Below are positions 7,701 to 16,700 of a stretch of 64,000 bases of DNA, piece after piece. The DNA lies in the NCBI GenBank assembly GCA_964106915.2, contig OZ066914.1; one strand, 5' to 3'. Positions within the stretch are counted from its first letter, which is position 1. Every line of letters starts with the position of its first letter. Made by a program: the position numbers and the translations under genes. The notes beneath the pieces are model-generated. The model was not told where the DNA came from. It worked only from the letters and a program-made list of their open reading frames with translations, and did not search any database. The stretch comes from Podarcis gaigeae. Its lineage: Eukaryota.

Positions 7701-10700
7701 AACAACAGCACAAGTGTTGTTGTTTTTTTAGAGAAACACACAAAAACAATTCCTAGAAAGTTTTAGAGAACACATGAGTGATTAGGACAAATCTGTTTTT
7801 TTTTCCACCCTCATTAAAAAAAAAAAAATCAGGATTGTGAAATGATTGAAGATGGCAAGAAACATGTCTTGATTCTTTACAACTGCAAACTGGATATGAC
7901 AGGAGAAGTGTCCTTCCAAGCTGCAAACGCTAAAAGCGCTGCAAATCTGAAAGTGAAAGGTAGGCTTCAGAAGGCATCAACTCCCAACCCATCTTGCAGG
8001 GTTTTCTTAATGCCCAGCAACATCAACAAAATCCATTTCTGGAGCAGTTTATAAACAAACAAACATGTGTCTAACACTCTTAATAACCCGGTTTGATTTC
8101 AGAGCTGCCTCTCATCTTCATAACTCCTCTCAGTGACATTAAAGTCTTTGAGAAGGATCCTGCGAAGTTTGAATGTGAAGTATCAAGGGAACCAAAGACT
8201 TTCCGTTGGTTGAAAGGAACCCAAGAGCTTGAAGGGGATGATAAATTTGAAATTATAACAGAAGGCACAAAGCACGCACTTGCCATTAAGAGTGTGGCTT
8301 TTGAGGATGAGGCTAAATATATGTTTGAGGCCGAAGACAAACGGACAAGTGCAAAGCTGATCATTGAAGGTTTGTTTGTAGCTCTGGTTCTCCTGACGGT
8401 GTGTTTGGCTTTCATATTTATGTCATTTGATTCGTCACAGTTTAACTTTAACGAGATGCTTTTGTGGTTTAGGCATTCGCCTTCAATTCATTACCCCTCT
8501 CAAGGATGTAACTGCAAAGGAGCGCGAGACTGCAGAATTTACTGTTGAGCTTTCCCATGATAATATCCCTGTTATCTGGTATAAGAATGACCAACGGCTC
8601 CATACCACCAAGGTTGTTTCAATGAAGGACGATGGCAAATTCCATACGCTCACATTCAAAGATCTCAATATTGATGACACCTCTCAGATAAAAGTGGAAG
8701 CTATGGGCAAATCGTGTGAAGCTAAACTTACTGTCCTTGGTATGTGTGGTCTGAGTTTGATTTACATTATGGCTCTTCTTTGATAGAACATCAACTAGAA
8801 CCATAACCATGGGCTTCCCCTTCCTCAGAGTAGTTCTTTAAATCTTATGGGGAGATCCCATTCCAGATTCTTATGTTACAGCTAGATTTGCCTCCATGTT
8901 AGGGCTTCCTTGGCAGCAGACCTCATACTTTTGAACATGCTTTCAAGAAGAGGTTCATATGAGCTCCTTTTTGGGGGGCCATCTATCCTCTTTCAGAAAG
9001 CTTCTGACAATTAACTGCCACTAGTTGATGTGTTCTGTTATACTGCCATGCTACCCTATTAGCAATCCTTTTGTGATTTATTTGTCCTTCGGTTCATTGT
9101 TTCGTTGTAGTTGTTGCTTTGAATTTGCACCCTTTTCTAAAACATTGCATCCATTGGCTGCCTGTTTCTTTCCGGGAACACAATACAAAGTACTAGTCCT
9201 GACCTATAAAGGCCTAAGTGGTCTGGGACCAGCATATCTAAAAGAACATCCTTTTCACATACAAGTCTACTCATCATTTAAGAATATTTTGGTGGCAAAG
9301 CACATGCCTTGCACACAAAAACTCCCAGGTTAAATCCCTTGCTTCTCCAGGTAATATTGGAAAAGACTCCTGTCTGAAACCTTGCATGGCTACAACCAAC
9401 CATTGTAGACAGTAGTACTAAGTTAGATGGAGCCTATGGTCTGACTGAGTGAAAGACAGTTTCCTATGTTTTTTTCTGTTGGGACCTTTTTCCAAACTCC
9501 CATGCTTGTTATTGTCATTCAGGCATTACTTTGAAACTGTCCTATTTTCCTGTTTTTTTAATTATCAGCAATAGCTTTCAATGTCTTTATATGGCTCTGC
9601 TGTAAGTTTTTGTGCTGCCATTTTATTTTTGTTTTAGTCTTGTTTTGGGGAAAACGTCATCCCTCCTACAAATTTTTGGATGTCGTATTGTCTAAGTTTG
9701 TTTTGAATTTGTTGTAAGCCGCCTTGTGGATCCAGATCTCTGGAAGGCGGGGTATAAATCTCTTTTAAATAATCAAAATAATGAAGAAATAAGAAATCAC
9801 TTTGTGGTGTACCACAGAAACACGTTTCTTTCGGGTCCGTGTAAATGGGGAAAAAATGAAAAGCAGAATCAGCTACTTTTACCTAATAACAATAATTTGC
9901 TCTATTAAAGTTTATTAAAAACTTGCTTTTAGAAAACTTTATCCCACATAGAAAATCGTTAAAAAGCACTCTTACCTGAAAGGAGAACTGTCTTGCATAA
10001 GTTGGTACAATTTTGAATGTATGAATAATCTTAGAATGTCACATATTCACCTTGACTTGCAGAGGGGGACCCTTATTTTACTGGGAAGCTTCAAGATTAC
10101 ACTGCTGTGGAGAAAGACGAAGTGATTTTGCAATGTGAAATTAGCAAAGCAAATGCTCCCGTAAAATGGTTTAAAGACGGGCAAGAACTAACTCCGTCTA
10201 AGAATGTTATTATCAAGGCCGATGGCAAAAAGAGAATACTCATCCTCAAGAAAGCCTTGAAGAAAGACATTGGTCAATATACCTGTGATTGTGGCACTGA
10301 TCAGACTTCTGCTAAGCTGAACATTGAAGGCAAGTTCACCCTTACTGGTGTATTATTATATTCTATTTTAAACCGCCCTGAGGATCATTCATTCGAAAGA
10401 CAAGATATAAATCTTCTTAATAAACACATAAATAAAATCTTCCTGATCCTTCTGTTATAGAACCCTACTCATCAACATTGTCATGAAAGCTAATAATATT
10501 GGTGTGGTTTTTTTTCCTTCACAGATCGTGATATTAAGATTGTACGTCCCTTATATAGCGTGGAAATATTTGAGACAGAGACTGCACGTTTTGATACAGA
10601 AATCTCTGAGGAAGATATTCATGCTAACTGGAAACTGAAAGGGGAGCCCTTGACACAGACGCCTGTAAGCTTTTAAATATTTCCCCACTTCTAAATGAGA

Positions 10701-13700
10701 CTTATATTGCCTAAAATATGCAGATGGACGAACATAAACTTTTGGAAAATCTTTGGAAGATCTGAGAAAGCACTGTAGGGGTGCTGAGAAAATAATTTCT
10801 ATATCAACACAGTTTAAATGGCTGGAATTGTAAATTGTGCAGTTAAGCAAAATATATAGAATGTAGTCATCCATGTTTCATATTTAAACAACAGAAAATA
10901 TATATTTCACGGAGAACAGTTTTAACGTTAGAAATCTGTAGATTGCTTTTGTAATGAAAAGCAATTGTAAGTAATGTGTAAATAATACAGTATTTGATAA
11001 AAATATGTTGGTTGCAATTGTTAAAGCAATGTACCAGGTGCCTTTGGAGGTTAATAACTGCAATCAATTGGTTCATTGTAGCCATATATAAGGGAGGGGG
11101 TAATGTTCCCATGTAAACAATTCAGAAAATCAATGTGCATGTTTAGCACATTAACATCTCATTGATCTGGACAATGCGTGGTTCAAGGCCTGAGGTAAAA
11201 GTTTTGCAAGAGTTCAGTAGTTCGTAGTCATTGGTTGTGTGAGCAGATGGAAGGGTTGCGCACAGTGCTCTGACCAACTTTAACTCTTCAGCAGCTGGCT
11301 GCAACACAGCCAACACTGTTCAGGAGGGCCTCTGACCCTCCAAAGAGGCTTTTCATGAGGCTCAGTGGGCTGCAGTGGGGAGGGGAAAGATTGGTTGCAC
11401 AAGCTCCCTTCTGCTCACACAGTCATTAGATACAGAACAATGGGGTCCAAGTACAGTGGTACCTCGGGTTACATACGCTTCAGGTTACAGACTCTGCTAA
11501 CCCAGAAATATTACCTGGGGTTAAGAACTTTGCTTCAGGATGAGAACAGAAATCGTGCAGCAGCGGCGCAGCGGTGGCGGGAGGCCCCATTAGCTAAAGT
11601 GGTGCTTCAGGTTAAGAACAGTTTCAGGTTAAGAACAGACCTCCAGAACAAATTAAGTTCTTAACCCGAGGTACCACTGTATTGTCAATGTACATGCCAG
11701 AGAATGTGTTGTTCTGGTATTTGTACTCCAAGACAGGATGTTGAGAATCATGGTTGCAAAACAGCAGCAGCCAGTACAATGTTTTGTCCCCAAAGGGGAA
11801 TAAAAGGTTGCTACCATTTTGAATATCCAAATACCAGAAATATGGACCTGATAAAAGGAAGTGAAAGCTATTAAGCGTTGTACAAACCTTTGCATTTGTT
11901 TGCTCTTGGAAGGACTGTGAAATTAAGGAGGAAGGCAAAAGGCACTGTCTTACCCTCTACAACGTGCGCTTGGACCAGGCCGGTAGCGTAGACTTCCAAG
12001 CAGCCAATGCCAAATCAACTGCCAATCTTCGAGTAAAACGTAAGTGTCTTGCAAGTGTATCTGTAAGATCACTTGTCTTTTACATCAGTAACTGAGCTAA
12101 ACTGAAACAAGTTGAGAGTCAGAATGGGGCACTGACACGGGGACAAACAGAAGAAGACACCTTCACCCCGGTATGGCTCCCCTTTATCACATACACAGCC
12201 CAACAGGACAATGACAATAATCCACCAACAGCATACAAATCAATATGGCTAACTTGATCCAAAACACCCACCCACCTCACTCACACACGAAAACAAAGAT
12301 CACCACAGCCAATCACAAACAAACAATCACATCCTAGGCCAACCCCAACCTCTCTCACCACCAAAGGAACACAAGTGAACAACACAAGCACGCTGACACC
12401 AAACTACATACATTAAGCATAATAGAAACACCGCTACCCGACCCCACCCCCATCCATCTCCCCTCCCTCCACCCTCCTTTCTTTCTTTCTTTTTTTTTCT
12501 TTTCTTTTTTCTTCTCCCCCTAATGCCTCAACAAATGAAATGGATTTGTAAAAATGTTACACGGGGGGAAAAAATACGAGGCATTACACTTACACTGTAA
12601 AACAAGAAAACCCTTAATAAAATATTTATATATATATAAAAAAAGAATGGGGCATGTGATCTGTTGTTAATGGAACAGTAAATGAGAAGGAGAGACAGTT
12701 GGGTGAGCTTAAGTTGAGGAGTAGTTATTTGATATAGTTGTGTCACTTATTATTTCATTATAAAAACTTTTTATAAGTTAATGCTGATACTTTTAATTTA
12801 GTTTGTTTGTTTGTTTGTTTTTAGATCGTGCGATAGGTATTATATAAAGAATTTCAATTAGTTAATAAGAACAGGTTGTTAGACCACTGGAATTGCCCCT
12901 CCTTATTCCAGGATGATTGGCAAGGTAGCATAACGAGTTGTTACGAAATCTAAAATATTACAAACAGACTCTCTGCTGTGCTTGGCATTTGGGGTATAAG
13001 ATCTGAGAGATAACACCATGCTGACATTTGTGGAAAGTGCCATTAGCTTGATGGACAGGAACACCCTACACAGTTGGTGACCACTTGTCTCTCTATCCAA
13101 TTGTAGACCTTCCTATTTTGGAAGGCGCATGCCTTATCTAGCAAGAGGCATGCAGGGCTTGGCAAAGGAGACAGATGCAACGTAGCTTTCTTGCTGATCT
13201 TTTCATTTAAAAGGAACAGGCTCCGCAAATAGGGAATCTCCAGTGACCAGCCCTCCCCCTGAAAACCCCAAGGGCCCAGATCTAGCCAGGGAATTTAAAT
13301 AGCCTCTGTACATCATACTCCCTCTCTCTTGGGGAAAGGCACTATGGCAGTTAGTAAAAGGTCCAGGTGGCTAATCTGAAGATGTTTTCTTCATTCCGTC
13401 AAGCACGTGTAATTGGCCTGCTGAGGCCTCTGAAGGATGTAACTGTAACAGCTGGTGAAACGGCAAACTTTGAATGCGAACTCTCCTATGAGGGAATTGT
13501 AGTGGACTGGTTCTTGAAAGGACAGAAATTGGAGCCCAGTGACAAGGTATAGAAGACATTCTTTCTCTTCTCCCCTTTTTCCGTGTCAAACCCTATTTCT
13601 TTCCCTCTTTCTCTCCTACCCCTCCCTTTTGTGAAACTGACAGTGCAATCCTATACATACTTACCTGGAAGTAAGCCACTTTGAGCTCAATGGGGCTTGC

Positions 13701-16700
13701 TTCCGAGTAGAGATCCATAGGATTGCACTGTAAGGCGCTATTCTAAAATATCATTCAGAAAAATCAGTTCCTTCCACATGGTGGAAGATAAAAGTTTCCA
13801 AGGGAGAGGTGAAAGGGGTTGGGGAGGTTTTGTATCAGTGCTAACATAAAGGGATATGTAATATTTTGATATTAGTGAGGAAGTTTATGAATGTTTGCAT
13901 CTCCTGATTCTTTCCCTTCTCTGAATGTAGAGCTGGCATCTAGTTTCTGCATATAAGGGGATTAAGGAGATTGAAATTCCATTTCAGGCATTTGAGCAGG
14001 CTTCCAGATAACTTTCTCGGTAGATCTGCTCGCAGAGCATTTCTCACCAGCTATTTTTAACCCTTCATCAAGTGTGCTGTTAGCGCTGAGATGTGAACAG
14101 CCTGGAATGCAGTTCATTCAATATTTAAAATGTTTTAGCAGCAAGCCATATAGTAGTATAAGTAATCACATGCAGAAGTTGCATTCAGTGAAATATTATT
14201 TGGTGCATGCTTTTTTAGCTCCTCTGTTTAAGTCGTTAGAGTGTCTGTTAATGATAGGCTTACGCAGAGAATATTTGCAAAGGAAAACAGAAATATGCCT
14301 GCTAAAATAAGGCCTAGTTAGTGCAAGTTTGAAATTACCATAGCCAATTCAGCCTAATCAAAACATTAAATTTAAACTAGCATAGTGAGATTTAACTAAA
14401 TGGATAGATTAATACTTACTGTTCCCATGAAAAATATTTTAATGGTGAAGCATTAATAGATGCATCATAAATATTTCAACTTTTATTTCATATTAATAGT
14501 TAGCAAGATTTTATGTTTTGCTTCTGATTAACCCATCTACATCAGTTTAAATGGGCCTATGATAACACAAACAATGGTGTTTAGGGCACTCCTACCCCAG
14601 TCCAGTAAGGGACTATAATCCATGCAGAACCAGGTCTCTCCTGACTTCTCCCCAGCTGGACAGGGAAGCTATGATGAAAAGCTTCTTATACTAGTACTGT
14701 AGCTCCCCGTTTTGATTGATTTGGATTATATCAACCCTTTGAAGAAGTTTACAGTTCCAGCAATCAGCTGGTGGATTCAGTCTGCCGACTCCCACAAAAC
14801 TCTAGAGGCCTTTGGGGCTTGGCGGCTGATTCAGTACGAAGAGCCGAAATTGTAACAAGAAATCAGAGAGGCCCCAATGCATGCCCAGAGGTGCATGGGT
14901 GTATAACTGGGAGTCTTTGTTTACCAGCCTATTTAGACAGACATGTGCTAACACAAATGTTTGATATAAGGTTGCAACATGTTTTCTTACCAAATCTATT
15001 CTCCTGAACATTCTTTTTTTAAAAGATCGTGCCCCGTGCTGAAGGCAGAGTTCACACCCTTGTTCTAAGAGATGTGAAACTAACAGATGCTGGAGAAGTC
15101 AAACTGACTGCAAAGGATTTCAGAACTCAAGCAAATCTTTTTGTAAAAGGTAGGCTTCCTAAAGTAACAATTTATTCCATTAGCGGTATGCTAGAGGCTA
15201 CTGATCTGTGTTAGGCAAAGTGCATGATTGGGCCAATCTTTTTCTGCAGTACTTTTTACACATAAAATGCTGAAAAGAATTCTGGCCATAACTCAGTCTT
15301 TTAAAAAGATCAGAATGATAGCGAGCTTTTCAAACTCTTGGGAGGAAAAAATGATGCATGTAGCACCAACATGATTTGTGGGGGTTTCCCCCTCCCTGTC
15401 CTCAGAACCACCTGTTGAGTTTACTAAGCCTCTTGAGGACCAGACTGTAGAGGAGGAAGCTACTGCAGTTCTGGAGTGTGAAGTATCCAGAGAAAACGCA
15501 CCAGTGAAATGGTTCAAGAATGGCCAAGAAATCCACAAGACAAAGAAATATGATATAATTGCTGATGGCAGAGTCAGAAAACTTATCATTCACGGCTGCA
15601 CACTGGACGATGCTAAAACGTACACATGCGATTCTAAAGATTTCAAGACGTCTTGTTTCTTGAATGTTGAACGTAAGTTTTTCTCATAATTTCCTTATAA
15701 AGACATAAATACGTATTTGCATGATTCCAAAGGTCGGCATGTTGCAAATATATGGGTGGGTCAATCTCATGGTGCTGTAAAACAAGCAGACCTTTGACTT
15801 AAGTGGGTTGGGCTTTTTCTTTCATCCACAAAAGTGGGAACCTCTACTTTATCATAACTCTATTAGAATAAATTATTATAACTAAGGCCATTGCTACGAA
15901 TTGAGATTCACGGATAAGAAAAAAAGAGATCGTTTTCAAACTAGAAATTTTTTCTTCCTTATAGCACCTCATGTTGAGTTCACAAAGCCCCTTACGGATA
16001 TTGAAGTTAAAGAAAAAGAAGTTGCTCGGTTTGAATGTGAAATTTCCCGACCAAATGTTCAGGTCTGTAATGTTTGTGTCTCTTCATATTTGCCCTTGTC
16101 AATAGCTTTTGCACAGAATCTCACAGCATTTATTGCAGCCACCAGGAAACATTTTCTATTTTTCTAGTCACTAGGGCAGCCCAAAGCATTTAGAAGGTGG
16201 AAATTGTGTCTACTAATAGCTCAAACCAAAAGATGATCTAGGTTGTCTGCATCATTCAGTCCCACCTTCACTAGCTCCTTACTATAAATCTCCAGTTGCC
16301 AACATGGTGCCTGAACAGCTTCATCTTTTTCACCTCTAAAGATTTCCTTAGGTGCCCTCAAAGCCTCTGAGCACCCTTCCCACCCATCTGCTTTTCAAGG
16401 ATCAGATTGGCACCTGAGCAGCTTTCTTAGGGCTGCCACAACATGGAAATATGGATCTGAGGCATGGGTCCTTAAGGATTCTCATAGCCTGATTGTTCCC
16501 TCACGCCCACCCCCAGGGAACCCAACCCTTCATACCAGCCTGCCATTGGCCAATTCCGCAGGCTGACACTGAACATGATTTCAAGTTGTGAGTGTGAGCC
16601 GAAGCTCTCGCTCCGGCTGGGATCAGCCCACCACACCCTGTCCTGCATCGTTGACAGGTAGGGGGGGGGGGAGTGCTGGTTGTCCCACAAAGCTGCTGCC

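Follow-up and report, generated by a model that had tools for sequence, protein, structure and literature searches.

The stretch of DNA analysed here, 64,000 nucleotides from the lizard Podarcis gaigeae (contig OZ066914.1 of assembly GCA_964106915.2; hereafter the window), carries part of the titin gene, TTN, and our subject is the intron upstream of one of its exons, e18, as a candidate internal start site for the titin isoform Cronos. Cronos has been linked both to sarcomere assembly and to how severe titin truncations prove in human cardiomyopathy; little is known about how it is regulated. A first-pass annotation had proposed a hidden promoter and an alternative N-terminus in this intron and had held the site to be undescribed in reptiles. 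Our literature searches agree: they returned no paper joining Cronos with lizards or reptiles, with an upstream open reading frame (uORF), or with a downstream enhancer. The literature already describes Cronos as shared by zebrafish and human; an orthologue in a lizard is therefore to be expected, and the presence of such a start here is the expected counterpart of a known feature, not a new kind of element.

The titin locus and the orthology of exon e18

The window covers lizard TTN from the end of the PEVK region into the A-band, with PEVK-type sequence near its start, then immunoglobulin (Ig) exons, the first FN3 domain at about 21810 and the Ig/FN3 pattern of the A-band. The orthologue of domain I27/I91 lies from 7559 onward, and its aligned portion closely matches PDB 1TIT. 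Fourteen Ig domains stand between I27 and the first FN3, and e18 opens the fifth domain after I27. The count of 14 agrees with I28-I41, which we take to be the corresponding series in human cardiac titin, so the label I96 given to e18 in the first-pass annotation is right provided that the domains correspond one-to-one with human.

Logan contigs from four RNA-type runs, representing four related organisms, were aligned over positions 9950-15900 (5951 nt) and yielded GT..AG joints at 10664>11913, 12039>13404, 13546>15026 and 15149>15406. The joint 12039>13404 occurs in all four runs and 13546>15026 in three of the four, confirming both borders of e18, 13404 and 13546. Together, e18 and e19 make up one Ig domain of 89 residues. 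The reading frame stays open through both and on through the later exons of the window. An elephant-shark UniRef model (P0093) is spliced like the lizard e18>e19, and the exon order e15-e20 is retained in four of the vertebrate loci used for comparison (L003, L006, L008 and L010). These loci, numbered L001-L012, were labelled ‘sauropsid’, ‘fish-type’ or ‘mammal’ from their sequence; the records that supplied the loci were SRR31508491, SRR22184601, SRR22464976, SRR18112698, ERR13828656, GCA_977066305.1, GCA_977066385.1 and JGI 3300039226. A PDB search with the e18 domain returned paralogues only, and no solved structure of this domain.

As mapped by 5' RACE, the Cronos transcription start site (TSS) of zebrafish ttna lies 110 bp before e116 and the initiator Met 7 amino acids before the exon; in mouse and human, the TSS lies 257 and 256 bp before e223 and e240, respectively, and the Met 12 amino acids before the exon (Zou et al. 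2015, eLife, PMC4720518). With the e18 open reading frame (ORF) as a lone query we recovered 124 short ORFs from other vertebrates, and the sequences fetched from these matches carry an intronic extension of one of three types: fish/shark, mammal or sauropsid. ORFs of the fish/shark type have Met at -7 and read MSSPQSK followed by ARVIGLL, and the elephant-shark model starts MFSPTSK and is spliced to the next exon. Mammal-type ORFs have Met at -12, for example MSDPEMFSSSRK followed by ARVIGLL. Both distances, 7 and 12 amino acids, agree with the published values (PMC4720518). The published human Cronos quantitative PCR primers (PMC11827849), translated by hand, point to the same exon. The full-length forward primer gives LHNCRL, whose lizard counterpart in e17 is LYNVRL; the shared reverse primer gives CELSYE, which is identical in lizard e18; and the forward primer specific to Cronos translates to AKLFLP, the extension seen in mammals. 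The mammalian locus L010 (from P0020) has an N-terminal peptide that differs from that of the published human primer. A 55-residue Cronos start searched against protein representatives matched chiefly giant multi-Ig proteins, whose scores came from many paralogous domains, and genomic read-through ORFs; no spliced Cronos-type transcript model turned up besides that of elephant shark. Synteny, Met distances and primer translations thus agree with the first-pass assignment, and on sequence grounds e18 is orthologous to the exon that opens the Cronos coding sequence, namely e240 in human, e223 in mouse and e116 in zebrafish.

The probable initiator codon and the conserved intron blocks

The first-pass annotation had placed the Cronos start at an ATG at 13382. 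The sequence bears out its description: the codon has an A at -3, lies 22 nt before the exon, and reads MFSSFRQ and then on through the AG acceptor (13402-13403) into ARVIGLLRP. An in-frame stop at 13355-13357 leaves it as the only possible in-frame ATG before the acceptor. A true ATG at -22 is found in seven of nine vertebrate loci (the window, L001, L002, L003, L006, L008 and L012); in L009 a 3-nt deletion brings it to -19, and in the mammal L010 it stands at -37. Further vertebrate short ORFs sampled from the 124 matches have the same extension, and the -22 position holds even where, as between fish-type and amniote loci, the intron around it cannot be aligned. At the codon of the mammalian -12 Met, sauropsids including this lizard have GTG (Val), and hence depend on the -7 ATG. 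These comparisons support ATG 13382 as the probable initiator of Cronos, conserved at the -7 codon position that is ancestral and also seen in zebrafish. Two side observations concern the codons just upstream. Over 13358-13381, and in L001, L003 and L009, sauropsids read V-x-N-L-K in frame before the ATG; and ORF callers print GTG as M, as in several of the called ORFs, which may mislead comparisons of N-termini.

A short uORF precedes the main ATG. The column of its own ATG is invariant in six amniote loci, and in each of the nine loci the ~100 nt ahead of the main ATG contain a uORF of 5-13 codons.

When window positions 10000-16000 were compared with the other loci by blastn, the exons aligned, and so did, in all four other sauropsid loci, a block beginning at 12905-13045 and continuing through e18; within it, intron positions 13041-13403 are conserved. 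Its core, 13025-13201, matches the mammal L010 at 70% identity (E 4e-16). The rest of the intron DNA is unalignable even in the closest lizard locus, with the exception of one downstream element. Across six species, invariant columns amount to 39% in 13041-13125, peak at 56% in 13126-13215 and fall to 16-20% in neighbouring blocks. Neither this block nor the downstream element came near threshold in Rfam, and a conserved intronic RNA gene was ruled out on this account.

All motifs named in the first-pass annotation are present where it placed them (AGATAACACC at 13008-13017, CAGTTG at 13071-13076, CACTTG, CCTATTTTGG, TTATCT and TTTAAATAG), and the six-species alignment separates them. The GATA/T-box motif AGATAACACC and the E-box CAGTTG are not conserved. 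The perfect CArG box, CC(A/T)6GG at 13112, is private to this species. Its orthologues share the core TATTTTGG, with TATTTTGGA (13113) as the conserved portion; in the other sauropsids the box reads NCTATTTTGG, beginning with G or A and fitting the consensus at 9 of 10 positions, and the mammal has TTATTTTGG, fitting at 8 of 10. The CCTTCC/GGAAGG arms around it are present and unconserved, so that neither the perfect box nor its palindrome holds as a conserved feature. Perfect CArG boxes number 12 in the window versus 6.6 +/- 2.9 expected, which is not above chance. It is possible that SRF binds the CArG-like boxes all the same. The first-pass annotation had named the CArG box and the in-frame ATG as features whose conservation in other species would bear on its proposal, and of the two only the ATG keeps its form from fish-type loci to sauropsids.

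The conserved elements of the block are invariant or differ in one species only. At the element at 13049, presumably a PBX/MEIS-like site, TGAT and ACA are invariant and the remainder near-invariant in the six species (conserved form TGATGGACA), and the fish-type locus L006 has a perfect TGATTGACAG at -375. L002 has CACTTC in place of CACTTG, and the mammal CCCTTG. The E-box at 13172 reads AGATGCA in five of six species, with GATGC invariant; L001 ends in G and L002 has TAGATG. A stretch TTTC..CTGA.CTT is conserved as well. Around 13134, where the first-pass annotation had read a GATA site, CCTTATCTAGCA.GAGG is invariant in five sauropsids (CCTTAT.TAGCA.GAGG at 13131), so the site is conserved that far; the mammal has CCTTATGTAG and no GATA. 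Since its TTATGT is not a GATA site, the element is probably TATA-like, and its position would suit a TATA-like element at -30 no less than a GATA site. The MEF2-like reading of TTTAAATAG at 13294 did not hold: the 600 nt before e18 in the window, 13294 included, contain no match to YTA(A/T)4TAR (the MEF2 consensus, YTAWWWWTAR). Closer to the exon, CTAAT or CTAAC stands ~30 nt before the acceptor in sauropsid and fish-type loci. Factor assignments for promoter and enhancer motifs throughout follow consensus matching and are putative.

The exception to the unalignable intron DNA is an element in the intron just downstream of e18. Within it, seven loci, ranging from fish-type to mammal, keep GATAAC and TATTTTTAAC without change. 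The distance between the starts of the GATA and MEF2 motifs, measured in four loci, is 41-45 nt, and GAAATTCCATTTCAGGCA (13973-13990) is common to amniotes as well. As judged by consensus, the conserved MEF2 and GATA sites sit in this downstream intron rather than in the upstream block, and positions 13920-14130 are the best candidate for a muscle enhancer of the Cronos unit.

Table 1. Features in and around the intron upstream of e18 (window coordinates).
Feature	Position	Strand	Remarks
Promoter block core	13041-13215	+	Most conserved portion of the intron upstream of e18
PBX/MEIS-like TGATGGACAG	13049-13058	+	One mismatch to TGATTGACAG
CACTTG (NKX-like or E-box-like)	13082-13087	+	In 4/5 sauropsids, at -320 to -340
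CCAAT box	13097-13101	+	Invariant in six species; ~-68 from the homology-inferred TSS; absent from the first-pass annotation
CArG box CCTATTTTGG	13112-13121	+	Within CCTTCC/GGAAGG arms, 13108-13125
TTATCT (AGATAA on the minus strand)	13134-13139	-	Candidate GATA site or -30 TATA-like element
Homology-inferred TSS	13165-13169	+	~237 nt before the exon
E-box CAGATG	13172-13177	+	Absent from the first-pass annotation
TATA-like TTTAAATAG	13294-13302	+	Possible driver of a proximal TSS; at -110, the zebrafish TSS distance (PMC4720518)
Short uORF	13344-13379	+	11 codons + stop; ends 2 nt before the main ATG
CTAAT, probable branch point	13371-13375	+	e17>e18 splicing (inferred assignment)
Cronos-specific coding extension (putative)	13382-13403	+	ATG + six codons (MFSSFRQ), then first base of Ala codon
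Exon e18	13404-13546	+	First half of Ig domain; RNA joints, I-set match; human e240 orthologue by sequence
Conserved element, downstream intron	13920-14130	+	Candidate muscle enhancer; aligns in L001, L002, L003 and mammal L010
GATA AGATAAC	14006-14012	+	Within downstream element
MEF2 CTATTTTTAA	14051-14060	+	Perfect consensus; within downstream element
MCAT GGAATG	14104-14109	+	Common to amniotes
Exon e19	15026-15149	+	Second half of same Ig domain; joints 13546>15026, 15149>15406

The probable transcription start and competing readings

To place the start, the published distance of 257 bp (PMC4720518) was measured off on L010, giving its position 1281, which aligns to window position 13167. 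Relative to this point, the CArG-like core lies at ~-50, the CCAAT box at ~-68, CACTTG at ~-85 and TTATCT at -33 to -28. This layout reads as that of a normal proximal promoter, and the TSS is most likely near 13167. RNA evidence comes from two contigs. The first, X1, spans 13099-13433 and runs continuously into e18, at a depth of 2.7 versus 68-81 for spliced sequence (~4%); the second, X2, spans 12904-13108, at 5.9 versus 187. They are the only non-repeat intronic contigs in the 5951 nt, both lie directly upstream of e18, and none of the four runs has any depth over the introns at 10746-11143 and 13930-14924. The contigs show no 5' end or strand, and they break 30 nt into e18, where two paths merge, so that a 5' end cannot be linked to later exons. 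They fit an internal start and give it weak support.

We consider it very likely that this part of the window is the lizard orthologue of the titin Cronos unit, with an internal promoter in the last ~360 nt of the intron before e18. The analysis shows the orthology, the canonical splicing and that the ATG, the uORF and both non-coding blocks are conserved; promoter activity in this species, the position of its TSS and the factors bound are what we infer from them. Counts of motifs and ATGs give no significance, and the case therefore rests on orthology and on cross-species conservation, which lifts the site upstream of e18 far above chance. The comparison supports the intron before ATG 13382 as a conserved promoter-type block, and it weakly suggests promoter activity in this lizard. 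The first-pass placement of the lizard Cronos start at this ATG is upheld by its position at -22 in most loci and by the conservation of the upstream block as far as a mammal.

Under this interpretation, Cronos transcription would begin within the intron, most likely near 13167, from a proximal promoter at 13041-13215 that would combine the PBX/MEIS-like site, CACTTG, CCAAT, the CArG-like TATTTTGG, TTATCT at -30 and the E-box CAGATG. Transcripts initiated in the intron have no upstream donor and would therefore run straight through the acceptor into 13404-13546. After the conserved uORF at 13344-13379, translation from ATG 13382 would add MFSSFRQ, and the frame would continue via the tenth-from-last I-band Ig domain (I96, if one-to-one with human) to the A-band and M-line; the predicted product is titin without its Z-disc and spring parts. 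The full-length transcript would treat the same DNA as intron, with the branch point CTAAT at 13371 and the AG acceptor at 13402-13403, so that the pyrimidine tract of full-length splicing would double as the FSSF codons. About 0.5 kb downstream, the element with GATA and MEF2 (and MCAT) at 13920-14130 probably acts as a muscle enhancer.

Several points weigh against this account. X1 starts 68 nt upstream of the homology-inferred TSS and X2 further upstream still; the lizard TSS may therefore be more distal or more dispersed. The two contigs may come from a retained intron, from a distal or dispersed TSS or from upstream antisense transcription, sources that they do not distinguish. The upstream block does not align with the fish-type loci, and the conservation just before the exon is partly due to splicing signals. 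The mapping of the -257 position also assumes that L010 behaves like mouse and human.

An alternative is that the promoter is real and that TTTAAATAG at 13294 is its TATA box, with the TSS at 13310-13340, where the first-pass annotation had expected it, a short zebrafish-like 5' untranslated region, and CArG/GATA activators at ~-200. TTTAAATAG is conserved in four of five sauropsid loci and its position at -110 equals the zebrafish TSS distance (PMC4720518), but it is deleted in L002 and unconserved in the mammal, the peak of conservation lies at 13126-13215 and not near 13294, X1 already covers 13099-13433, and the mammalian distance maps to ~13167. We therefore regard this arrangement as unlikely, although the two start sites could coexist, and a second, zebrafish-like proximal start may lie behind 13294.

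Less probable still, with only a small chance of being right, is that the block serves full-length titin as an intronic enhancer or splicing regulator and has no promoter activity in the lizard, in which case the ATG would be incidental and the contigs pre-mRNA. In its favour, the RNA contigs are shallow and do not reveal where transcripts begin, the branch point and the pyrimidine tract constrain the last 40 nt in any event, and in-frame ATGs before acceptors are common: by a heuristic acceptor search, ~20 of the 80 exon-like open segments of the window (~25%) have one. Against this, the exact position of the ATG is kept from fish-type loci to sauropsids despite an unalignable surrounding intron, the orthologous site is the experimentally mapped TSS in zebrafish, mouse and human (PMC4720518), and no other intron in the 6-kb stretch has a non-repeat RNA contig. 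That short motifs and an ATG came together by chance in neutral intron sequence has practically no probability: each motif alone occurs at chance frequency, but the alignments refute this reading, as the block is conserved as far as a mammal where neighbouring intron DNA is unalignable even between lizards.

Known systems, a possible vertebrate cassette and neighbouring repeats

The site resembles published Cronos (PMC4720518), which in human starts in intron 239, in several respects. Synteny, the encoded peptide and the translated primers all identify the same exon, about ten Ig domains short of the A-band. The ATG sits in intron sequence, a few codons ahead of the acceptor, and its frame runs on into the exon. 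The lizard Met stands at -7 codons as in zebrafish, and the upstream block is common to the lizard and a mammal. It differs in that lizard and other sauropsids have GTG (Val) at the mammalian -12 Met, leaving only the -7 ATG usable, and in that no other species compared has the perfect CArG box; the lizard site is known from sequence. Compared with muscle promoter and enhancer modules built from MEF2, GATA, TEAD, SRF and E-box sites, the downstream element has consensus GATA, MEF2 and MCAT motifs and the upstream block has CCAAT, a CArG-like core and an E-box, whereas the CArG is imperfect in all other species and the upstream ‘GATA’ is not GATA in the mammal. Novex-3 is likewise a shorter titin isoform from the same gene, but it arises through an alternative terminal exon and is anchored in the Z-disc, while the lizard site would be an alternative promoter yielding the C-terminal part.

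More tentatively, and at somewhat less than even chance in our estimate, Cronos may form a ‘gene within a gene’, a fixed cassette of jawed vertebrates composed of the -22 ATG, the uORF and the GATA/MEF2 enhancer, with the lizard state as the ancestral one. The ATG would then have stood at exactly -22 from a time before fish-type and tetrapod lineages parted, and mammals would have shifted it secondarily to -37. The uORF, directly upstream in every lineage, would exert translational control of Cronos output, and an enhancer of GATA and MEF2 sites with a fixed spacing of ~43 nt would occupy the intron just downstream. Such a cassette would have parts that are absent from the papers searched.

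The squamate site carries the ancestral -7 Met, and the comparison yields a short list of elements conserved among amniotes or vertebrates: the block at 13041-13215, the uORF and the downstream GATA and MEF2 sites. The conserved uORF and the downstream GATA+MEF2 element appear to be the parts most worth further study, and the intron-specific 5' end offers a defined probe for a rise of Cronos in tail-muscle regeneration.

Three further features of the neighbouring introns were noted. In the e16-e17 intron, 11343-11740 is an interspersed repeat. In all four runs it draws RNA contigs by the thousand, at 85-95% identity and with a summed depth in the tens of thousands. It has no Rfam match and is probably a SINE-type (short interspersed nuclear element) sequence carried in many transcripts. 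In the e17-e18 intron, RNA contigs with numerous mismatches, drawn from three of the four runs, cover a CT-rich low-complexity repeat at 12139-12735, which is unrelated to the promoter block. Just past the e18 donor, 13637-13734 forms a perfect-register hairpin of two 49-nt arms, 78% complementary and without a loop. RNA contigs of all four runs cover this region, its mir-1677-like score is weak and far below the Rfam threshold, and the hairpin is probably an interspersed repeat.

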